A stretch of DNA of 64,000 bases, taken from positions 186,001 to 250,000 of IMG/VR virus record IMGVR_UViG_3300035156_000206; one strand, given 5' to 3'. The notes under the pieces are model-generated. The model had not been told where the DNA came from. It did not search any database and saw only the letters and a list, made by a program, of their open reading frames with translations. The stretch's first letter is position 1; every line of letters begins with the position of its first letter. This document shows positions 1 through 40,036 of this stretch, one piece after another. The translations under genes and the position numbers were made by a program.

Positions 1-375
1 GAGAACATGCCTGAATCAGGTCAGTTCATTTCTGAAGAAGGCAAGAACCGCATTGGTATGTCAACGACTACCCGCTCCAAGCTGAAGGCTTGTCTCAACT
101 TCAAGTCGCTGCTGGAATCAGGCAAGATCACCATCAAGTCGTCACTGCTTGTAACAGAGCTGAAGATGTTCGCTACAGGCAAAGGTTCATACATTGCTCT
201 GCCAGGCGGAACGGACGATATGGTTATGGCTTGTATGATTGTGGTGCGTCTGTTAAGCGAGATCGCTTCGTACGAACAAGAGGCTTTTGACAAGCTGTAT
301 GTGTACTCGGAAGAGGAGATGCAGTTTGGAGATGATGAGGGCAGTATTGAAGAGCCACTCGGAATGATATTCTAA
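1..375 (+). CDS. terL: Terminase large subunit, C-terminal nuclease end (T4 gp17-like); gene begins upstream of the window
   Basis: Frame is open from base 1. KACLNFKSLLESGKITI...ELKMF...GGTDDMVMA matches the T4 gp17 C-terminal pattern (LKDLIE..KL.I...EF.TF...HDDLVM). Confidence 0.85.
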   Translation, partial: ENMPESGQFISEEGKNRIGMSTTTRSKLKACLNFKSLLESGKITIKSSLLVTELKMFATGKGSYIALPGGTDDMVMACMIVVRLLSEIASYEQEAFDKLYVYSEEEMQFGDDEGSIEEPLGMIF

Positions 376-27947: not shown

Positions 27948-28868
27948 ATGAAAAATCCATTCACCGCGATGTTAGCTGAACTGAACATCTCCCTGGGCAA
28001 CAAACTGATCGCTCCTTCCTCGAGCAGTGAAGTTGATGCCCTGAGCGACAAAGAAGAAGACAAAGTAGGTGGTATGGAGTTGCCATCTGACGAAGAGGTC
28101 ACAGACCTTGATGATGCCGAAACAGATCTGAGCAAACTAACACTTGACCAGATTATTGCTGCCCTGCAAGCTATCAAGAAAAGCCAAGAACAAGAGGCTG
28201 ATATTGGTGGTCAACGCATTGAGCCACACAGCGACTTTGCAGATGTGGACCCAATGGATCCTCCTGAGAATGTCAATCCTGCTGACAACCGTATGCCAGA
28301 TGAGAATCTGCTGGACGATGAAGGTATCCCTGCTCTGCCAGGTATGCGTCGTTCCCCAGAAGATGAACAGCTTGCTGGTCCTAAGAAGTCCAATCCTTTT
28401 AGCAACGACGAAGAGGAAGACAATTTGGACGATCCAGAAGGCGCGTCTTTTGATGGCTTTGATGCCGATCCTGAAGGCGATGCTGGTGATGTTGACCTCG
28501 ACAAAGAAGGCGACGATGCCGACCCAGTAGATGACTTCGGAGCTGATGTTACCAAAGGTGAAGACCCGATGGGTGGTGATGACATGGGTGCTGAAGATGA
28601 GCCCGATGAAAACCACATGGGAACTATCCGTGCTGTTAAGGGTGCCCACTTAGTCTACAAGCGCCAAGCTGGTGACGGTACATTCTCTGAGCTGTGGACG
28701 TACAACATTGGCGAACACGTCAATGATGCTATTGCCATCAAAAAAGCTATTGTTGCTGGTACAGATATCCCAGAAAACAAGCTACGTTCAGATGACGGTA
28801 CTCAGTCATATGAGCTGGTCACCATGGGTAATGCTCAGTTGCTGAAAATTACTGGACTGCCTAACTAA
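27948..28868 (+). CDS. Highly acidic late protein, probable internal head protein
   Basis: D/E-rich disordered body with a folded C-terminal ~80 aa; late promoter; MLAE near the N-terminus. Confidence 0.6.
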   Translation: MKNPFTAMLAELNISLGNKLIAPSSSSEVDALSDKEEDKVGGMELPSDEEVTDLDDAETDLSKLTLDQIIAALQAIKKSQEQEADIGGQRIEPHSDFADVDPMDPPENVNPADNRMPDENLLDDEGIPALPGMRRSPEDEQLAGPKKSNPFSNDEEEDNLDDPEGASFDGFDADPEGDAGDVDLDKEGDDADPVDDFGADVTKGEDPMGGDDMGAEDEPDENHMGTIRAVKGAHLVYKRQAGDGTFSELWTYNIGEHVNDAIAIKKAIVAGTDIPENKLRSDDGTQSYELVTMGNAQLLKITGLPN

Positions 28869-29555: not shown

Positions 29556-29672
29556 CATCATAGCAAGGACACCAGTCGAACAAATAATTGGTGTCTTTGT
29601 TCAGAACATGATGTATCATGCGTAGCGTCAGCAGTCTACAAATTGACCAAACATTTGAAAACAGGAAATTAC

Positions 29673-30698
29673 ATGGAATACAACAAAATTCGCAGCACGG
29701 ACTACTCGGAAAAGATGGACGACACCATCTTCACATACGACGAGCAGTTCTACCCACTGGACAGTGACCTACCAGATCCTCAGGTCGATCCTGTGATTCC
29801 TGGCAAGCGTGTCATGATCCAGAAAGTTGGTATTGCTCCAGTCGATCTGCCAGTGAAGTTGCTGCGTCGTGATGGTGGTGTACAGGTTCTCCAGACAGAA
29901 GCATCGCTGTATTGCTCACTGGATGACATGAACGCAAAAGGCCTAAACCTGAGCCGTCTGTATCTGATCATGCACGACACGATCGAAAACCAACTGTCAC
30001 TCGATGGCATCAAGGCAGCTCTGCACAATCTGGCAACCAAGCAAGGTAGCAAGAATGCATACTGCAAGCTGCGCTTCAAGTACCCATGGCATCAGGAAGC
30101 TCTGCGTACCCGTAAGGAACTTGCGGCAATCCCTGAAGGCGCAGTTCACGATCCAATGCTGACGCAGACTCTGTCTGATGGCACTGTGATCAACCGTGAG
30201 AAGATGGTTGGCCACATCGCTTATAAGACCGAGATCGAAGGTCAATACATCGACGGCAAGTACAAGTTCTTCCTGACGGTGGACTATGTGTACTCTTCAA
30301 CTTGCCCATGCAGCTTCGAACTGTCACACAATGCTCGCAACTATCGCAAGCAAGCGGCCAATGCACACAGCCAGCGTTCGATCGCAAAAGTCAAAGTGCA
30401 ATTCAATCCAGACAACGTTGTGTGGGTCGAAGATGTGGTTGAACTGTGCCGTCATCAGATCCCAACGGAAGTTCAGATCGTGGTCAAGCGTCGTGATGAA
30501 CAAGCATTTGCTGAACTGAACGGTTCGAACCTGCTGTTCTCGGAAGACACGGCCCGCCTGTTGTACGAATCACTCGATCAGTGGTACGACTCAGGCAAGA
30601 TCAGCGACTTCAGTGTATCGATCTCCCACGAAGAGTCGTTGCACCCATGGAACGCAATCGCGGTTGTCTACAAAGACATCCCAGGCGGTCTGCGCTAA
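29673..30698 (+). CDS. folE2: GTP cyclohydrolase IB (FolE2)
   Basis: IQKVGI..V.LPV, SSTCPCS.ELS, AHSQRS, KR.DEQ.FAE and HEESLH motifs. Confidence 0.92.
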   Translation: MEYNKIRSTDYSEKMDDTIFTYDEQFYPLDSDLPDPQVDPVIPGKRVMIQKVGIAPVDLPVKLLRRDGGVQVLQTEASLYCSLDDMNAKGLNLSRLYLIMHDTIENQLSLDGIKAALHNLATKQGSKNAYCKLRFKYPWHQEALRTRKELAAIPEGAVHDPMLTQTLSDGTVINREKMVGHIAYKTEIEGQYIDGKYKFFLTVDYVYSSTCPCSFELSHNARNYRKQAANAHSQRSIAKVKVQFNPDNVVWVEDVVELCRHQIPTEVQIVVKRRDEQAFAELNGSNLLFSEDTARLLYESLDQWYDSGKISDFSVSISHEESLHPWNAIAVVYKDIPGGLR

Positions 30699-30703
30699 TC
30701 AAT

Positions 30704-30719
30704 AGGCCCTTCGGGGCCT
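30704..30719 (+). terminator. UUCG tetraloop hairpin (terminator or stabilising stem)
   Basis: AGGCCC-TTCG-GGGCCT followed by GTTTT. Confidence 0.6.
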
Positions 30720-30742
30720 GTTTTAACTAACAAAGGAACAAC

Positions 30743-31222
30743 ATGTCAGAAGTAAAGAAACCAATTTATGTCAGTACGAAAACTTACGGTGCTGAGCGTG
30801 GATTCGCAGTAGCATACCGTCAGTTCAAAGCAGAAAGCCATTGCAACCTAATTCACGGTTATGCGATGGGCTTCCACTTTGAGTTCGAGTCGACCGAACT
30901 AGACGTGCGCAATTGGGTAGTTGACTTTGGCTCACTGAAGACTCTCAAAGAAAAGCTGGACGACTGGTTCGATCATACGTGCCTTGTTGCAACAGACGAT
31001 CCAGAGATCGAGCTGTTCAAGGAAATGCACAAGCGTAAGCTGATCAAGATGGTCGAAGTTGAGCGTACTGGCTGCGAAGGCCTGGCAACGTTCCTCGCAG
31101 AGTACATCAACGAAATCTGGATGGAAGAGAATGGATACCACGGGCGCGTGAAGCTGCGCAAGGTGGAAGTCCGCGAAACCCCAAGCAATTCGGCCATGTG
31201 GCTGAATCCAGACCGCGCTTAA
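30743..31222 (+). CDS. queD: 6-carboxy-5,6,7,8-tetrahydropterin synthase QueD
   Basis: HCNLIHGY (CxxxHG), WVVDFG, FDH and VEVRETPSN motifs. Confidence 0.9.
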   Translation: MSEVKKPIYVSTKTYGAERGFAVAYRQFKAESHCNLIHGYAMGFHFEFESTELDVRNWVVDFGSLKTLKEKLDDWFDHTCLVATDDPEIELFKEMHKRKLIKMVEVERTGCEGLATFLAEYINEIWMEENGYHGRVKLRKVEVRETPSNSAMWLNPDRA

Positions 31223-31282
31223 ACGCCTTATAGATGTGATCTTATAGTGTATAAGATCACATCTATCATCCACAGAGGAAGT

Positions 31283-31603
31283 ATGAATATTAGCCTAGAT
31301 TATGACGATACCTACACACGAGATCCCGCAACTTGGGATAAGGTTATACAAACCTTTCGTGAAGCTGGCAGCAAAGTGTACATAGTCACCTGGCGGTTTG
31401 ACAAACAAACCGCCTTTGATTATGGTGGGCTGTTCGGTGACGAAAGTGGTGTGGTTCGCGAAGCTCTGGATGGTAAAGTCGACGGGATGTTCTTTACAGG
31501 ACGCACAGCTAAGGCAATGTTTATGTATAACCAAGGCATACGAATTGACGTGTGGATTGACGATGACCCACAAGCAATCCTCAGAAACATGCAAGGGCAT
31601 TAA
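31283..31603 (+). CDS. Small HAD-superfamily phosphatase-like protein
   Basis: ISLDYDDT (motif I), IVTWR (motif II), WIDDDP (motif IV). Confidence 0.7.
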   Translation: MNISLDYDDTYTRDPATWDKVIQTFREAGSKVYIVTWRFDKQTAFDYGGLFGDESGVVREALDGKVDGMFFTGRTAKAMFMYNQGIRIDVWIDDDPQAILRNMQGH

Positions 31604-31645
31604 ACTGCAGTAACCCTAACAAGATCAATTTGTTTTAGAAACATG

Positions 31646-31674
31646 TTGATCTTGTTCACGTCCTACCCTATAAT
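31646..31674 (+). promoter_or_regulatory. Sigma70-like early promoter
   Basis: TTGATC-17-TATAAT upstream of the Acb2-like gene. Confidence 0.75.
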
Positions 31675-31705
31675 GTTCTGATCGCCACCACACCTGAGAT
31701 CGAAC

Positions 31706-31957
31706 ATGGACAGCAACATTGCACAAGACGTATTCCACACCACCTACCGTGACCTTACGGAAGAAGAGGTGCAACAACTGACCTTGATCAAGCAAACGGC
31801 AGCATTGCTGTATTCACAGATCAGCCAAATTGCCTACATGCACACTGAAATCAACGTGGTGCGTGAGGTACAAATTGCCCAAGAACGTCTTGAAGAAGCC
31901 ATTATGTGGGCTGGCAAGGCAATGTCGAGCCAACTTTACAACTTGAAGCACAATTAA
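31706..31957 (+). CDS. Acb2/Tad1-hairpin-like cyclic-nucleotide sponge (putative anti-CBASS)
   Basis: YRDLTEEE....IK and RE..IA...LEEAIMWA.KA resemble Acb2 (YRDLSQEE...RVK; RW..I.KT.IQ..MM.IIRAI) and Tad1 (EEALMW). Confidence 0.7.
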   Translation: MDSNIAQDVFHTTYRDLTEEEVQQLTLIKQTAALLYSQISQIAYMHTEINVVREVQIAQERLEEAIMWAGKAMSSQLYNLKHN

Positions 31958-31969
31958 GAACAACACCTG

Positions 31970-31998
31970 TTGATATTGTTCTGAACCTCACCTATAAT
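31970..31998 (+). promoter_or_regulatory. Sigma70-like early promoter
   Basis: TTGATA-17-TATAAT upstream of the dpdL-like gene. Confidence 0.75.
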
Positions 31999-32027
31999 AT
32001 TCGTACAGTAACTTAACAAGGAAACAC

Positions 32028-32435
32028 ATGCCATACATCACAAAAGAAGACGGCTCCAAGTGGCGCATCACTGACACCAAAGTTGTGTTTGCATCATTGC
32101 AGTTCCAAGGCATCCACAACTGGCCTGGTTGTCCGTTTGACGAAGTCGCCTATCTGCGCGACCCACACCGTCATATGTTCCACATCAAAGCCTACAAGGA
32201 AGTCTTCCATGACGACCGCGACGTCGAGTTCATCATGCTCAAGAATGCCATCCAAAAGTACATTGGGGAAACGTATCCTAATGGTGTGTTGGGTGCCAAG
32301 TCGTGCGAAATGCTCGCAGTAGAACTGATCGAAAAGTTCGAGCTCTGCCAGTGTGAAGTAAATGAAGATAACGAGAACGGTGCGATCGTTACTCGCGAAA
32401 CAATGCAACTCGGTAGCCTGTGCGTGGAGCCTTAA
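32028..32435 (+). CDS. dpdL: QueD-paralogue T-fold protein, DpdL-like (putative CDG decarboxylase)
   Basis: LRDPHRHMF matches the LxxxHRHxF signature, plus HDDRDVEFI, SCEMLA and EDNENGA. Confidence 0.75.
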   Translation: MPYITKEDGSKWRITDTKVVFASLQFQGIHNWPGCPFDEVAYLRDPHRHMFHIKAYKEVFHDDRDVEFIMLKNAIQKYIGETYPNGVLGAKSCEMLAVELIEKFELCQCEVNEDNENGAIVTRETMQLGSLCVEP

Positions 32436-32436
32436 T

Positions 32437-33288
32437 ATGATGAACCCATCTATCCCTCTCCAGTCCAATCTGGTCAAAGAGCCACAGTTTTGCATCATCA
32501 CTCCAACGGCATATCTGGAGCAGTACGCTTCACAATCGTCGATGCACCTGATTCTTGCTCACCTGGTTGATACTGATGATGCGTATGCTGCTTACTACGC
32601 AAATCGTGACACCGACGAACTGAAGATCATGGACAACGGCGCCTTTGAATTGGGTCAGTCGTATGATCCAGAAAAGCTGATTGAGCTGGCTCGCAAGTGC
32701 CGTGCTGATGCAATCGTGCTGCCAGACTATCCAGGCCAGAATCAAGACAAGACCATCGAAGCAGCTATCGAATGGGCACCAAAGGTCAAAGCAGCTGGAT
32801 TCAAGACGATGTTCGTTCCTCAGTCGGTAGTTGGTGACACTGAAGGCTGGATCGAAGCATACACTTGGGCTACTCTCGACAACGACCTGATTGATATCAT
32901 CGGTATGTCGATTCTGGGTATCCCGAATGCGCTTCCACGCATTAACCGTGCATATGCTCGTGTTGTGATGACGTCGATGTTGATTGACCAGAACATCTTC
33001 AACTTCCAGAAGCATCACCACTATCTGGGCCTCAATTCGGGACCAGCACTGGAGATTCCTTCGTTGATCAATATGGGTGCTCTCGGATCGTGCGATAGCT
33101 CGAGCCCTGTATGGGCTGGTATTTGTGCAAACGAGTATTCAGAGAACACTGACAGCTTCATGTCAACCAAGAAGATCTCGAAGCATGTTGACTTCAATTA
33201 CCCAATGGTCAAGGATCCAAACGTACACCGTATGATCCAGCGCAACGTTGACCTCACCCTCAGCCTCTTTAAAAAGGAAACAAAGTAA
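32437..33288 (+). CDS. dpdA: TGT-fold deazaguanine DNA transglycosylase-like protein (DpdA family, possibly DpdA3)
   Basis: IMDNGAFE, VLPD, FVPQ, HYLG and SCDSS TIM-barrel motifs, adjacent to dpdL/queD/folE2. Confidence 0.7.
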   Translation: MMNPSIPLQSNLVKEPQFCIITPTAYLEQYASQSSMHLILAHLVDTDDAYAAYYANRDTDELKIMDNGAFELGQSYDPEKLIELARKCRADAIVLPDYPGQNQDKTIEAAIEWAPKVKAAGFKTMFVPQSVVGDTEGWIEAYTWATLDNDLIDIIGMSILGIPNALPRINRAYARVVMTSMLIDQNIFNFQKHHHYLGLNSGPALEIPSLINMGALGSCDSSSPVWAGICANEYSENTDSFMSTKKISKHVDFNYPMVKDPNVHRMIQRNVDLTLSLFKKETK

Positions 33289-33500
33289 TGACCACAGCAG
33301 TTGAAGTCCAAGCAATGGACGAATTGTGGGTCGAAATCGTCGGTTTCGTCCCAAAAAAAGAGCAGAAAGACCTAGCTCTGAAGGTTGTCCGCATCTTCGA
33401 AGATAACCTAGATGCCAATGGCGCCGAATCAGACCACCCGATGCTGCGTAAGGCATCGAATGAGCTGAATGGTGAAGAAGACGAAGAGGACGAAGACTGA
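33288..33500 (+). CDS. Small acidic hypothetical protein
   Basis: 70 aa; TAATG/TGATG coupled. Confidence 0.6.
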   Translation: MTTAVEVQAMDELWVEIVGFVPKKEQKDLALKVVRIFEDNLDANGAESDHPMLRKASNELNGEEDEEDED

Positions 33501-34018
33501 TGTTGGCGAACCCTACCGATATGATCGCGCAGGGGTTCGTCAAGAACCTCAAAGACGTGAACAAGCAAGTACAGCCAAATGCAATCGACTTCACTGTTGA
33601 CCAGATCCAGATGATCGGTGATGGCACATCAGAGCACGATTGCATCATTGGCGAGAGCAAGAAAGAGATGGCTCCACAAACGCCAATCGCTGCGAATATG
33701 GAGGGATTCTTTCCTCTAATTGCCAACCGGTCGTACGATATCTCGTCAGATATGTACGTTGAAGTGCCAGCGGGATATGCTGCCATCCTAGTGCTACGGT
33801 CGACCTTTGTTCGAAACGGTATGATCTTGGCATCCGGTCTCTATGACAGTGGCTTCAAAGGCAACATTGGTGCTGTTCTGCACACCAACAATGCAAATGC
33901 ACTGGTTGAAAAGGGCGTTCGCATTGGCCAAATCATGTTTGTTGAATCCAACTCACATGGCGTCTATGCAGGTGGCTACAACACAGCAGATGGCATTCAC
34001 TGGAAAGACAAAGCATGA
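33500..34018 (+). CDS. Trimeric dUTPase/dCTP-deaminase superfamily protein
   Basis: QVQPNAID, RST..RNG, SGLYDSGFKG, RIGQI and Y.GGY motifs. Confidence 0.85.
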   Translation: MLANPTDMIAQGFVKNLKDVNKQVQPNAIDFTVDQIQMIGDGTSEHDCIIGESKKEMAPQTPIAANMEGFFPLIANRSYDISSDMYVEVPAGYAAILVLRSTFVRNGMILASGLYDSGFKGNIGAVLHTNNANALVEKGVRIGQIMFVESNSHGVYAGGYNTADGIHWKDKA

Positions 34019-34386
34019 TCAATGTTACTCCTACTACAATGAGCCTCAAGCCAGGAGAAGTTCTGGTATTGACGGTCGATGTAGCCAACCTACCTGCACA
34101 AAAGGCAGCCGAAGTAATGAGGCACGTCAAGGAGTTCAACGAATTGGCGGTGCATGCCCGGGAGAACGGCAACGTTGTATTGGTAAAATCCAACCGGGTG
34201 CAAGCAGAAGTGCTGTCGTATGGTCCAGAAGATCGTGTTGTGGCATACGTAGATATTGGTAATCTGCCTAGACAGGCGGCCGAAAAGTATCTGGAGCATG
34301 TGCGGGAGCAGTTGAAAGAATCGATCCCGTCGGACCAAACGTTGGTGGTAGCCAAGGGCAACAAGTTTGAGGTCCAGAAAGCATGA
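34015..34386 (+). CDS. Small protein made of two portal-clip-like repeats
   Basis: TVDVANLPAQKAAEVMRHV and YVDIGNLPRQAAEKYLEHV resemble T4-type portal [19 protein letters not shown] (recalled from memory). Confidence 0.6.
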   Translation: MINVTPTTMSLKPGEVLVLTVDVANLPAQKAAEVMRHVKEFNELAVHARENGNVVLVKSNRVQAEVLSYGPEDRVVAYVDIGNLPRQAAEKYLEHVREQLKESIPSDQTLVVAKGNKFEVQKA

Positions 34387-34646
34387 AAACGATCATTCAC
34401 GTCAACCAACACGTCATCAAGTCGAACCGTAAGGATGGGGTGAATGATCCTGTTCTTACAGTCAAGACCTACAAGGACAACACATACGCGCACAGCGTCG
34501 AAATCAAAGGCGATAGCAAGGTGGTATATAGCCCTGACAAGCCTTTGAGTTGTGGGGCCCACGTATGGATTGAGACCCATGCAGAGGTTATCTGCCACCT
34601 AAACCCAACAGAAGAAGAAAATGAAAAAACGACCAGCAATGTTTGA
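34383..34646 (+). CDS. Hypothetical phage protein (IIHVNQH.I...P.LTVK...PLSCGA.VWIET)
   Basis: 87 aa; motif familiar from phage hypotheticals; function unknown. Confidence 0.7.
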   Translation: MKTIIHVNQHVIKSNRKDGVNDPVLTVKTYKDNTYAHSVEIKGDSKVVYSPDKPLSCGAHVWIETHAEVICHLNPTEEENEKTTSNV

Positions 34647-35244
34647 CCTAGTCCTGGCACTAGATTCTGAAACGTCCGGAATTGCCATGGGCTCTCTTGA
34701 TCCCACTTACAGGTCCGATCCGGGCGTGGGTGCCGAACGGTACCAAGCCGTATCCTTTGGACTGATTGTGGCAGATGTCCACACTCTGAAACCTATCGAT
34801 TCGTTGTACGTCGAGATTAAGCACGATGACAACTACTACAATTGGTCCGATGGCGCTGAGCGAGTGCACGGCCTGTCCCGTGAATACCTGGAAGCTAACG
34901 GCATGTCACTGGTTGACGCCGCCACTAAAATCCTGAACTTCATCGAAAAGTACTTCGGTCCGTATCAGGCAATCCGTAAGCTGCCAATGCTCGGCCACAA
35001 CGTAGCCACATTCGACCGCTACTTTTTGCATGACCTACTGAGCCACATCGACGTTGAGATCCAATTCGGCAATCGACACATCGATACGTTCTCGCTGGGT
35101 GTAGTTCTGATGGATCTATTTTCTTCGGATGAACTGTTTGACTTTTTCGAACTAAAGCGTGATGCTGAGAAGCATAATGCACTTGATGATGCGAAGTATG
35201 CTCTCAAGGTGGCTCGTCTGATGAAAAAGAACTTCCAAGCCTAA
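34639..35244 (+). CDS. DEDDh 3'-5' exonuclease (DnaQ/epsilon-like)
   Basis: LDSETSG, GHNVATFD, IDT and HNALDDA motifs. Confidence 0.88.
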   Translation: MFDLVLALDSETSGIAMGSLDPTYRSDPGVGAERYQAVSFGLIVADVHTLKPIDSLYVEIKHDDNYYNWSDGAERVHGLSREYLEANGMSLVDAATKILNFIEKYFGPYQAIRKLPMLGHNVATFDRYFLHDLLSHIDVEIQFGNRHIDTFSLGVVLMDLFSSDELFDFFELKRDAEKHNALDDAKYALKVARLMKKNFQA

Positions 35245-35254
35245 GGGGAACCGT

Positions 35255-35704
35255 ATGACCGTAGCAAAAATTCGTTATTCGTACAACCAAATCACGCAGA
35301 TGTGCGAAGATCTGGCTGAAATTATTAACGACATGGATGAAGCCGAGAAGCCAAAGACTATCGTTGGCTTGATCCGTGGTGGTTGCATTCCAGCTGTGAT
35401 CTTGTCGCACTTGACCAAGATCCCTTGCAAGATGTTGTCCTATTCTTCGCATCAAGGATTTGGCGGCGGTGAGAATGACAACCAGATCCCAGGTGACATT
35501 CTGGAAGGTGTGATGCAACTGTTTGTAGATGATATCTGCGATTCAGGCTACACCCTGAAAGAAGTGATGGAAGCGTGTGGTGAAGGTATGGGCAACCTAT
35601 CAGCCTCATTGATCTACCGTGATCACACTAAGTCACAATTCGATCCAGACATGTATGCCACGCGCATCACCGATTCAAGCTGGGTAGTGTTTCCCTGGGA
35701 ATAA
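35255..35704 (+). CDS. Purine phosphoribosyltransferase (Gpt-like)
   Basis: IVGLIRGGCIPA, LFVDDICDSGYTL (PRPP-binding) and WVVFPWE motifs. Confidence 0.88.
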   Translation: MTVAKIRYSYNQITQMCEDLAEIINDMDEAEKPKTIVGLIRGGCIPAVILSHLTKIPCKMLSYSSHQGFGGGENDNQIPGDILEGVMQLFVDDICDSGYTLKEVMEACGEGMGNLSASLIYRDHTKSQFDPDMYATRITDSSWVVFPWE

Positions 35705-35746
35705 TCCCAAGCATTGCCCATCCACTACAATAGTACAAGGTATAAA

Positions 35747-36199
35747 ATGAAATTAAGCTCCACACTGTCATGGGCCGATAAGCTGGTCCTGGTTAGCCGC
35801 TACGAATTGAGCGAGACCGAAGCATGTACCGCATTTGGCGTCACCAAGCAAGAGCTAGTCGTCGCAAAGAATCTGCTCGCTAAAGGTGTGTTTGCACCGA
35901 ATGAAACGCTGAATACATCCATTTACAGCGACTTCTTTGTCAAGCTCCGCAGTGGTGAATTGGATCACCTTCAGAAGACGTTTAAACCGAAAGGTGCACG
36001 TCCAAGCAAGATCACGATGGCATTTGAAGCCATCACGGATTCGCCACAAAAGGTATCCGAGATCATCGAGCGCTATGGCGTATCTTTGGCAGTACTACGG
36101 CAGAGCAAGCGCTTTGACAAAGGCAACGTTGGTCAAATCCATATCCGGAAGGATAAGGATACCAGCGAATTGATGGTGTGGCGCGACAAACAGGACTAA
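35747..36199 (+). CDS. Hypothetical protein
   Basis: ORF in operon context. Confidence 0.6.
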   Translation: MKLSSTLSWADKLVLVSRYELSETEACTAFGVTKQELVVAKNLLAKGVFAPNETLNTSIYSDFFVKLRSGELDHLQKTFKPKGARPSKITMAFEAITDSPQKVSEIIERYGVSLAVLRQSKRFDKGNVGQIHIRKDKDTSELMVWRDKQD

Positions 36200-36201
36200 A
36201 C

Positions 36202-36402
36202 ATGAACATTACTGAAGCGTTTGCTCCCCAAATTGGGGATGAAAGTACCAACTTGTATTTTGTTGGGTTTGCCGAAGGCAAAATGGAAATCCTGAAGGTC
36301 AAGGAAAGCGACCTTCCTTCGATGGATGCTAAGTGGGAACTGATGGACCCCGCATATGATGTTGGGTCCGTACTGCCACGACTGAAACAGAAGCTGGATT
36401 GA
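36202..36402 (+). CDS. Small hypothetical protein
   Basis: AGGA RBS; 66 aa. Confidence 0.5.
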   Translation: MNITEAFAPQIGDESTNLYFVGFAEGKMEILKVKESDLPSMDAKWELMDPAYDVGSVLPRLKQKLD

Positions 36403-36404
36403 AT

Positions 36405-36821
36405 ATGAGCATACTTGAGCAACCAATGTATTCAAAAGACTTCACTATTCAGTTCACTGATCTTGATGGAGTACCGCATGAGGCAACTGTAGCATTGGGG
36501 CGCAACGTCGTGGCGATATCAAAAATCGATTACGCCGAAGCCTCATTTGGGATAGGCGTAGGTAGTACGGATGTCAAATTCTACGATAGTGTGGGTGCAC
36601 TAAAGGGGTTGGACTTTTTGGTTGCTGAAGGTGCCTTTAATGTTGTGATCCACCTAATGGATAAGCACCACAACGTCAAAGTGGTTCGGACACTGCAAGG
36701 CTGTGGGATTCGGAAGACCGTCTTTCAGTCTCTACTGGCTCATTCGTGCAATGATGTGATGGGGACATCCTTCGGAATCATGTTCAACACATACACAAAC
36801 ACTTACCCAGATACGGAGTAA
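36405..36821 (+). CDS. Hypothetical protein, possibly tail-tube-like beta fold
   Basis: F.IQF...RNVV.ISK...VKFYD...IHLMD...L.GC.I pattern is loosely similar to T4 gp19-like tubes. Confidence 0.4.
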   Translation: MSILEQPMYSKDFTIQFTDLDGVPHEATVALGRNVVAISKIDYAEASFGIGVGSTDVKFYDSVGALKGLDFLVAEGAFNVVIHLMDKHHNVKVVRTLQGCGIRKTVFQSLLAHSCNDVMGTSFGIMFNTYTNTYPDTE

Positions 36822-36825
36822 TACC

Positions 36826-37356
36826 ATGGTAGTAAACACAGGCGAGATGATCCTCTTCTGGCAACCCGATTCGATCTACTCGAACTGGTATCCAAACACT
36901 CCGTTGGTGCTAGCCGAGTACCCAAAGCTGAAGTTTGACAACTCTGAGGCAGCATTCATGTTCCTCAAAGCAAAGGCCTTTGGGGATGATGTGATGGCTC
37001 TCATGATTCTGAACAACCAGGATCCTTGGGAGACCAAGAAGATGGGTCGCCGCATCAATGCGTACAATGAAGAAAAGTGGGCAGAAGTTCGCGAAGATGC
37101 GATGTTTGCGGCCTGCTACGCAAAGTTCTCCCAGAATGAAGACCTGAAAGCAGAGTTGCTTTCAACTGGTACTTTGCTGTTGGTCGAAGCAAGTCCAGTA
37201 GATAAGATCTGGGGAATCGGCCTGGCACCTAATGAGCCAAGGGCTCGTCGAGTTGAAACGTGGCAGGGCCTCAATCTGTTGGGTAAAATCCTGATGGAAG
37301 TACGGACGGTACTTGTCAATGAAATGGCTCGCGATGTAGCGGAGACGGCACAATGA
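36826..37356 (+). CDS. NADAR (YbiA/DUF1768) hydrolase
   Basis: YSNWY, SEAAFM..KA..F.D, KK.GR, AKFSQN..L...LL.TG, LVEASP.D.IWGIG and G.NLLG.ILM motifs. Confidence 0.92.
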   Translation: MVVNTGEMILFWQPDSIYSNWYPNTPLVLAEYPKLKFDNSEAAFMFLKAKAFGDDVMALMILNNQDPWETKKMGRRINAYNEEKWAEVREDAMFAACYAKFSQNEDLKAELLSTGTLLLVEASPVDKIWGIGLAPNEPRARRVETWQGLNLLGKILMEVRTVLVNEMARDVAETAQ

Positions 37357-37619
37357 GGATCGACACACTAATTTCACTGTGCCAGATGTATTCACGAGAA
37401 GGACACTCCATTCATGAACAAATGGATGATGTGATGGAGGGGAGGGACCTGGAAGAACTGAACCCAAACGCTCTAAAAATCATTCGTGCATTCTTTGAGA
37501 GAGCAGCCCGTGCCGACGTGGATGGTGCTGACGGTCTGGCAGAGATGATCGAGGATCACCAAGCCACGCTTGTCGTTTCTGACAATCGCATATATAATAG
37601 TTCATTATCACAGGAGTAA
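37353..37619 (+). CDS. Hypothetical protein
   Basis: 88 aa; ATGA coupled. Confidence 0.55.
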   Translation: MRIDTLISLCQMYSREGHSIHEQMDDVMEGRDLEELNPNALKIIRAFFERAARADVDGADGLAEMIEDHQATLVVSDNRIYNSSLSQE

Positions 37620-37624
37620 TTTTT

Positions 37625-38524
37625 ATGGCAAAGTACGAATGGTCGGAAGTATTTCAATCGATCGAAGGTGAGGCTCGATATTCAGGCCACCCAACGGCTT
37701 ATATCCGTTTCACGATGTGCAACTTCCAATGCCGTGGGTTCAACAACCCAGAGAAGCTGGATACCACATCACTAGACGTGTTGGGTTTCAACCCAGCCGA
37801 CTACAAAGACATCTACTCGATCCCGCTGATCACGCGCGGCTGCGACTCGATCTATTCGTGGGATGACAAATTCAAGCATATGTGGAAGAAAGGCACTCAG
37901 GATGACCTCGTAAAGGAACTGATTGAAGTGCTGCCACACAACAGCTTCGTTAATCCTAATTCGGGCAAGCGCACTATTCTGTCGTTGACGGGCGGAGAGC
38001 CAACGCTGCGCATGAAGTTCATCCCTGAGCTGCTTGCGCACCCAGACATGAAAGAATGTCGCCACATCCTGATCGAGACGAACTGCTCTGTCAAGCTGAA
38101 AGAAGAGCACATGCACCAACTGGCTGAATGGGCAGGCGATCATGGCGGGCGTGGTCCCGGACGCGTAACGTGGAGCAATTCACCAAAGCTGTCGGTGAGT
38201 GGTGAAGACTGGTCGGAAGCAATTCGTCCTGAAATTGCTGTGATGCAATTGCAATCAGCGTCGATGTCTGGTTATTTTGACCAGTACTTCAAGTTCGTAT
38301 GTGGACCAAACGAAGCAGACTTCGCTGAAGTGGAGAATGCGATGGAAGAGTACTACAGTGCTGGCATTTCGCGCGACACTGATGTGTACGTAATGCCAAC
38401 TGCTTGTACCGAAGAGCAACAGCAGACTGTGTCCGCTACAGTGGCCAACATGTGCATTCAACGTGGTTACATCTACTGCCACCGCATCCAGAACTCTGTA
38501 TTCGGAAACGGTGTGGGGACATAA
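37625..38524 (+). CDS. queE: 7-carboxy-7-deazaguanine synthase QueE (radical SAM)
   Basis: FQSIEGE.RY.G.P, CNFQCRGF...CDS, LTGGEP, IETN, SPKL, YFKFV and YVMP motifs. Confidence 0.92.
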   Translation: MAKYEWSEVFQSIEGEARYSGHPTAYIRFTMCNFQCRGFNNPEKLDTTSLDVLGFNPADYKDIYSIPLITRGCDSIYSWDDKFKHMWKKGTQDDLVKELIEVLPHNSFVNPNSGKRTILSLTGGEPTLRMKFIPELLAHPDMKECRHILIETNCSVKLKEEHMHQLAEWAGDHGGRGPGRVTWSNSPKLSVSGEDWSEAIRPEIAVMQLQSASMSGYFDQYFKFVCGPNEADFAEVENAMEEYYSAGISRDTDVYVMPTACTEEQQQTVSATVANMCIQRGYIYCHRIQNSVFGNGVGT

Positions 38525-40012: not shown

Positions 40013-40036
40013 AAAGCCGCATTGTGCGGCTTTTTT
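40013..40036 (+). terminator. Rho-independent terminator
   Basis: AAAGCCGC-ATTGT-GCGGCTTT followed by TTT. Confidence 0.85.

Follow-up and report, generated by a model that had tools for sequence, protein, structure and literature searches.

We report that an open reading frame (ORF) of a soil jumbo phage very probably encodes, judging from profile comparisons of its predicted product, a tandem pair of domains that are homologous to the clip of T4-type portal proteins. Each copy probably comprises strand beta1 and helix alpha6 with the tip loop between them, plus one or two additional strands. The ORF is located at positions 34015-34386 (+ strand) of the window, i.e. the 64,000-nt stretch covering positions 186,001 to 250,000 of the IMG/VR virus record IMGVR_UViG_3300035156_000206. 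This record (hereafter G000) has 291,967 bp and derives from a biocrust metagenome, and the sequence was found in two biocrust DNA runs only, with no RNA run among those listed. The predicted stand-alone tandem portal-clip-like protein starts at an ATG and has 123 amino acids (aa), 13.6 kDa and a pI of 6.3. Its units, the boundaries of which were taken from alignment A1, comprise residues 9-66 (unit 1; 34039-34212, + strand) and residues 67-121 (unit 2; 34213-34377, + strand), each with one copy of a shared motif, i.e. T20-E40 (residues 20-40; 34072-34134, + strand) and Y78-E98 (residues 78-98; 34246-34308, + strand).

The evidence for the relationship comes from several profile comparisons. 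The ORF product matched the Pfam family PF07230 (Portal_T4) with 31.9 bits (gathering cut-off 22.9, E=7.7e-8) in two stretches, with both units falling on profile positions 205-239 of 433 and nothing matching beyond; these positions correspond to residues 279-317 of the T4 portal protein gp20, the beginning of the clip domain. It likewise matched the PHROG portal family phrog_213 (E=2.2e-8). The original prediction, which had described the ORF as a stand-alone tandem copy of the portal clip motif, is thus borne out by Portal_T4, phrog_213 and hhalign as far as the N-terminal strand-helix element of the clip is concerned, and the gp20 string that it had given was correct: HMMER places ORF residues 70-109 on gp20 279-317 of PDB entries 6uzc/3ja7, and in the alignment both motifs fall exactly on gp20 residues 288-311. 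Unit 2 also aligned with residues 249-284 of the phage's own portal protein at 41% identity (BLASTP, E=1e-6).

When the relatives of the ORF were compared with the portals as alignments, hhalign gave probabilities of 91.5-96.1% (E=8.6e-7 to 3.3e-9), the highest being reached by an alignment of 32 units (A4; 96.1%, E=3.3e-9) with the consensus VDVGxLPxxKAxxY, which was built for a unit profile. Searched against all 177,635 PDB sequences, this unit profile had the T4-type portal as its sole significant match (gp20 281-310, E=1.7e-5), and in five complete phage genomes (180-385 kb) its matches were confined to the portal clip and to small genes of the family. Four relatives passed the Portal_T4 cut-off independently, i.e. 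P0010 (44 bits), P0019 (38), P0016 (37) and P0007 (24). In the case of P0019, the similarity covered portal residues 254-326 and thus the whole clip including its hairpin (hhalign 95.6%, E=1.2e-8); homology to the clip hairpin was demonstrated for P0019 only, not for the window ORF. The full portal architecture of about 500 aa (wing, stem, clip, crown) is absent from the 123-aa ORF, in which the clip alone is represented, and a separate portal gene of 564 aa is present in the same genome. Therefore, the ORF is not a portal protein.

The two repeats noticed in the original prediction reflect a real duplication, since units 1 and 2 align with each other at E=3e-8 (BLASTP; 13/32 identities) and the similarity extends beyond the motifs. 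According to the alignment with gp20, motif copy 1 has equivalents of the T4 residues N291, M292 and K296 in N25, L26 and K30, and motif copy 2 keeps the first two as N83 and L84 and has A88 at the position equivalent to K296. The family is present as a single copy in the genome of the window. An antisense open frame of 221 aa (33933-34598, - strand) spans the entire ORF and was taken as a non-coding shadow, since homologues exist for the + strand ORF, which also fits into a gapless string of + strand genes.

An exhaustive HMMER search of 1.84 billion protein representatives yielded 22 real relatives with E-values from 2e-21 to 1e-3, most of them 111-136 aa long and aligning colinearly across both units, so that the duplication predates the family. 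A further candidate, P0011 (1112 aa, 10 stretches), was excluded as a low-complexity repeat artefact. Another 15 clusters, all unnamed, came from a profile search, and the family is rare, with about 40 known clusters that occur in one-, two- and three-unit forms. Of note, these unit numbers per chain all divide 12, the number of portal subunits. Single-unit members are found in 191-196-kb Vibrio phages and correspond to phrog_23805, a 72-position profile of no assigned function that the ORF matched in two stretches (E=1.8e-13); the unit profile in turn matched the phrog_23805-type Vibrio phage genes with E=1.9e-17. A three-unit member is P0007. A related phage (364 kb) harbours a single-unit clip-like ORF of 98 aa at L100:1507-1803 of its 363,531-bp IMG/VR record, located ~8 kb upstream of the portal gene in the same genome; a hairpin-like stretch of this ORF resembles the portal clip hairpin, with an hhalign probability against portals of only 9%.

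The family was seen exclusively in phages that have a T4-type portal or terminase, and the two-unit gene is absent from jumbo relatives sharing 40-56% identity in the large terminase subunit (TerL) as well as from the phages XacN1, KVP40 and S-ShM2. A word-indexed homologue search with the single ORF protein matched nothing but itself, a search among IMG/VR loci returned no relatives of the ORF, megablast of the region against cultured phages gave no match, and neither NCBIfam nor PADLOC contained a match to the ORF. We conclude that the ORF is no stray portal fragment but a member of an as yet uncharacterised family of accessory proteins in phages. Since no stand-alone portal-clip family turned up in the literature that could be searched, this free-standing tandem architecture of a portal domain is new within that scope.

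The best-conserved columns of the 32-unit alignment form the tip motif VDxGx[LM]PxxKAxxY. Its aspartate is present in 25/32 units (3.2 bits) and a leucine or methionine occupies the position of M292 in 31 of the 32 (3.0 bits), followed by the alanine (25/32), the proline (24/32), the tyrosine (19/32) and a lysine or arginine at the position of K296 (19/32). That a surface loop is the best-kept part of such a small domain suggests that it is a binding site. The 27 residues around the tip were further compared with those of ten portals. Unit 1 shared 13/27 residues with the T4 portal, 11/27 with that of Vibrio phage pv27, 10/27 each with those of cyanophage S-ShM2 and KVP40, and 5/27 with the phage's own portal; the corresponding values for unit 2 were 11/27, 8/27, 12/27, 12/27 and 9/27, with a range across the ten portals from 7/27 (XacN1) to 12/27. 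The own portal has the tip GKMPPAMTKK and lacks the asparagine and the lysine that unit 1 keeps. Considering this low likeness, the gene has not been copied recently from the resident portal, nor does it track it.

Modelled by AF2 with the family alignment (pLDDT 79, pTM 0.58), the protein has the order strand, helix, strand, strand, then strand, helix, strand, i.e. strand 16-21, helix 28-50 and strands 54-59 and 62-66 in unit 1, and strand 75-79, helix 86-101 and strand 109-114 in unit 2; the model made without an alignment was unusable (pLDDT 43). The T4 clip, which spans gp20 residues 279-358, has been described as three strands and helix alpha6 (PMC4493910), and unit 1 of the model, with three strands and one helix, equals this description. 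The check proposed originally, i.e. for structural similarity to the gp20 clip, gave a divided answer: when unit 2 alone was searched against the ESM Atlas, a 524-aa Portal_T4 cluster came first (TM 0.74 over 53 residues), but BON, POTRA and OmpA-like domains superposed on unit 2 about as well, so that the similarity is present and not specific. The case for homology therefore rests on the sequence profiles. Structure aligners repeatedly took residues 61-115 as one compact module, suggesting that the last strand of unit 1 goes with unit 2, as a sheet shared between the units would require. Ring-building motifs of type III secretion systems (T3SS) and of the sporulation machinery were among the whole-model matches (Z 3-5), including weak structure-aligner matches (Z 3.2-3.5) to those of PrgK, EscJ and SpoIIIAF.

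As the original prediction had stated, the gene does not lie in a head operon: the own portal gene (G000 160588-162282, 564 aa) is located about 58 kb and the TerL gene (G000 184843-186375, 510 aa) about 34 kb upstream of the ORF, with the 3' end of the latter, which encodes a candidate partner of the ORF product, occupying positions 1-375 (+ strand) of the window. Its placement in a cluster for nucleotide metabolism and modification has likewise been confirmed by the families of the neighbouring genes. The ORF lies inside a gapless string of + strand genes running from 32028 to about 38500, and this string and its neighbours encode FolE2, a PTPS/QueD-like protein, a QueE-like radical-SAM protein, a deaminase-like protein, a DnaQ-like exonuclease, a phosphoribosyltransferase and NADAR. 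Immediately upstream, the stop codon of a dCTP-deaminase/dUTPase-like gene (33500-34018, + strand; Pfam DCD, E=2.1e-14) overlaps the ATG of the ORF (ATGA), and in the same manner the ATG of an 87-aa gene downstream (34383-34646, + strand; phrog_8676, function not assigned) overlaps the ORF stop codon (ATGA).

The FolE2 GTP cyclohydrolase gene (29643-30698, + strand), the PTPS/QueD gene (30743-31222, + strand) and the QueE-like radical-SAM gene (37625-38524, + strand; NCBIfam QueE matches far below cut-off) belong to a 7-deazaguanine-type gene set that spans 29643-38524 on the + strand and in which the genes for the dCTP-deaminase-like protein, the DnaQ-like exonuclease, the phosphoribosyltransferase and NADAR are likewise counted. 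A 308-aa ORF (32362-33288) takes the place at which one would expect a DpdA-type transglycosylase, and it matched no Pfam or NCBIfam family. With regard to expression, a sigma-70-like promoter match (31970-31998, + strand; TTGATA, 17 nt spacer, TATAAT; 11/12) is located in the gap before the gene string, and a terminator-like hairpin (40013-40033, both strands) is the first strong one downstream of it. This single promoter match is no more than a hint of early transcription of the ORF; sigma-70-like matches are not enriched in the region. The T4 late-promoter octamer was rejected as a marker of timing, as 13 copies were found genome-wide versus about 12 expected. One exact copy, TATAAATA, is located at G000 184809, 34 nt upstream of the TerL ATG, and a second copy lies 39 nt upstream of a 306-aa ORF at window position 27948.

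Among cultured phages, the Xanthomonas jumbo phage XacN1 comes nearest in portal sequence (50.8% identity). The own portal has a Gly-rich low-complexity C-terminal tail, and a very Ala/Gly-rich ORF of 443 aa (L001:13-1344 of G000) stops 13 nt before the portal ATG. Among the TerL relatives, P0048, P0058, P0149 and P0156 are 846-876 aa long, carry the homing-endonuclease families PF14528 and/or PF05204 and look like intein-containing terminases.

What could a free clip domain do? In T4, the clip sticks out of the capsid, where the packaging ATPase gp17 and later the neck protein gp13 attach to it; the gp20 tip residues N291, M292, R295 and K296 point towards gp17, and packaging is lost when they are mutated (PMC4493910). 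A 24-residue gp20 peptide comprising residues 288-311 binds gp17 and inhibits packaging (cited in PMC4493910). The three-stranded clip sheet is composed of a single strand supplied by one subunit plus two by its neighbour, and it forms the only main-chain to main-chain contact between T4 portal subunits, thereby adding to the energy of assembly (PMC4493910). Based on this, the reading that we tentatively prefer, while holding it to be doubtful, is that the ORF encodes a soluble clip mimic that binds a partner of the clip, most likely TerL, and competes with portal docking. The conserved tip motif would bind the protein that normally binds the clip, with the ATPase domain of the large terminase as the most likely partner and a neck or adaptor protein as the alternative. 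Such binding would be in competition with portal docking, and packaging might thereby be delayed or modulated, or the motor of a co-infecting T4-type phage might be blocked. The latter target is conceivable because unit 1 looks like a canonical T4-type tip and not like the resident one. The tandem pair may moreover complete the inter-subunit clip sheet within a single chain and in this way present a stable two-subunit clip surface.

Several observations weigh against a clip mimic acting on the packaging motor. First, the repeats resemble other portals at least as much as the phage's own, which is unexpected for a regulator of the own motor. Second, the largest branch of the family, found in marine T4-like phages, has lost the N, P and K of the tip motif and kept the hydrophobic L/M alone, and the motif may therefore be partly structural. 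Third, the ORF gene is probably co-transcribed with nucleotide-metabolism genes and the marine homologue is located between genes for a dCMP deaminase and a DNA polymerase, a context that points to replication rather than to packaging. Fourth, searches with the whole model (Foldseek against PDB, BFVD and AFDB clusters; VIA-align; Atlas) returned no portal, and the matches were only to generic two-layer beta-alpha-beta folds such as MIF/4-OT and the C-terminal domain (CTD) of MamM, with Z <=5. Co-folding of the ORF product with the own TerL gave a score of 0.00, which is rated by the method as no answer and not as evidence against an interaction.

The second and third of these points lead to the alternative that survives best, namely that the clip fold has been reused outside packaging, e.g. 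as a small adaptor in the machinery of replication or dNTP synthesis, and that the likeness to portals reflects ancestry only; we regard this as a real, if modest, possibility. In four diverged marine T4-like contigs (L006, L009, L109 and L110), the homologue occupies a fixed slot of the replication cluster before the gp43 polymerase gene, preceded by gp45, gp44, gp62, regA, hsp20, dCMP deaminase and sometimes AdoMet decarboxylase, and followed by an ORF of roughly 100 aa, the gp43 polymerase, uvsX and gp41. The window itself has the order dCTP-deaminase-like gene, ORF, 87-aa ORF and DnaQ-like exonuclease with overlapping stop and start codons, and the closest homologue, P0002 (41% identity), shows the same gene order downstream. 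The loss of most of the portal-like tip motif from the marine branch would fit as well. On the other hand, gene order is weak evidence in phages, and the small ORFs downstream are not homologous between lineages: the roughly 100-aa marine ORFs of L006 and L009, the sole pair compared, are 39% identical, but the 87-aa phrog_8676 protein is unrelated to the roughly 100-aa genes of other lineages, and a conserved two-gene module was therefore rejected. In addition, the Vibrio phages and a 314-kb phage carry the gene among tRNAs and small ORFs of no assigned function and not among replication genes. A role in replication also leaves unexplained why the segment that in portals faces the terminase is the best conserved.

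The original prediction had suggested a decoy that mimics the portal in order to titrate a portal-sensing defence system or the terminase. For the former, the ORF product would either bind the portal-sensing domain of a receptor such as Avs4, Avs11 or RAZR without activating it or cover the clip of monomeric portals and so hide it from the sensor, which we consider unlikely. Portals are indeed sensed by several defences, i.e. by Avs4, which senses portal monomers, by Avs11, and by RAZR, which senses portal rings. The patchy distribution of the family, with the absences from TerL relatives and from XacN1, KVP40 and S-ShM2 given above, is typical of accessory or counter-defence genes, and both the sigma-70-like promoter upstream of the gene string and the DNA-modifying functions of neighbouring genes would agree with such a role. 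However, recognition by the Avs proteins involves entire folds and extended interfaces, and RAZR requires a ring as wide as the portal, so that a clip unit of 55 residues may be too little for either of them. The repeats show no tuning to the own portal (5/27 and 9/27), the ORF had no match in PADLOC, and there is no resemblance to portals, nor any relationship to the ORF, in the described anti-Avs proteins ORF55 (annotated as a DNA ligase) and ORF83. Moreover, a branch that is syntenic in the replication cluster is unlike a fast-evolving counter-defence gene. A decoy of the own portal is therefore somewhat disfavoured, given that the repeats are no closer to this portal than to others and that the largest branch has lost the tip motif and is fixed in the replication cluster.

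A further explanation, distinctly unlikely in our view, is that the protein modulates portal assembly: its free beta-edge would pair with the clip strands of single portal subunits or of rings not yet complete, and it might act on the own portal as a chaperone or cap, or poison that of a competitor. The contribution of the clip sheet to the assembly energy of the T4 portal (PMC4493910) and the presence of homologous strands in every unit speak for this. Nevertheless, the conserved segment comprises the tip and the N-terminus of the helix and not the strand edges, and T4 already uses gp40 and YidC for the assembly of its portal (PMC4493910, figure legend). Finally, that a common strand, turn and helix N-cap motif arose by chance or convergence in an ORF unrelated to portals is scarcely credible, because four relatives exceed the Portal_T4 cut-off independently, the unit profile picks out gp20 specifically, both in the whole PDB and in whole phage genomes, and the alignment of P0019 runs through the clip hairpin, even though the aligned core has merely 30-35 residues, the whole-model matches (MIF/4-OT, MamM CTD) are generic and BON and POTRA domains fit unit 2 equally well.

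Returning to the soluble clip mimic, it is tempting to speculate that such units assemble by strand exchange into a pseudo-portal docking surface or ring, which would sequester the own or a competitor's terminase or blind portal-sensing receptors. We judge this extension to be improbable, and rings of clip-like units are only an idea; if true, this would be the first phage-encoded decoy of one of a phage's own conserved structural proteins.

Both the packaging motor and, at a later stage, the neck dock on the portal clip, and several immune receptors of bacteria sense the portal. The literature that could be searched does not describe a naturally occurring, soluble and duplicated clip surface encoded away from the head genes, and its meaning would depend on its partner. 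If the ORF product binds the terminase, it would represent a phage-encoded regulator of, or weapon against, the packaging motor and a ready-made probe for the poorly resolved interface between portal and motor. If it binds a portal sensor, it would belong to a new class of counter-defence proteins, and if the fold has been reused in replication, it would clearly exemplify how a domain of a virion protein takes on a new role. Whichever the partner, members of the family offer structural work the clip in its smallest known folded form.

Among known proteins, the tautomerase superfamily (4-OT, MIF, cis-CaaD) provided the best whole-model Foldseek matches to the ORF and follows the same logic as the clip-like family in having single-unit (4-OT) and fused double-unit (MIF, cis-CaaD) members. 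A catalytic N-terminal proline is a feature of this superfamily. Membership was rejected, as neither the ORF nor its relatives have a proline after the initiator methionine and the matches had a TM of 0.30-0.34 and E about 3e-3. The phrog_23805 proteins, e.g. WXB48151.1 of Vibrio phage VB_VaC_SRILMA and WNO23560.1 of phage pv27, share the fold unit with the ORF, but have one unit only and are encoded in a region of tRNAs and small ORFs. The packaging-interference proteins of satellites, i.e. Ppi of SaPI and Gpi of PLE, resemble the ORF product in being small proteins acting on the packaging motor so as to divert or block it, as proposed here for the ORF. Ppi binds TerS, and Gpi acts on the ICP1 terminase. 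Both differ from the ORF in that their sequences are unrelated to it and they are encoded by satellites rather than by the phage.

The closest comparison is that with T4 itself. The clip domain of T4-type portals has the same strand, tip loop and helix motif (VDxGN[LM]PxxKAxxY) as the ORF, and of the three strands and one helix described for it, the model of unit 1 has all and that of unit 2 two strands and the helix. In contrast to T4-type portals of about 520-570 aa, the ORF lacks wing, stem and crown, combines two clip units in one chain, does not have the 20-residue insertion found between helix and hairpin of the portal clip, and has its gene in an operon for nucleotide metabolism, a long way from the head genes. 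Both ORF motifs align with the inhibitory gp20 peptide 288-311, with unit 1 sharing 13/27 residues including the equivalents of N291, M292 and K296. While that peptide is a laboratory reagent, the ORF encodes a natural protein that is predicted to be folded.

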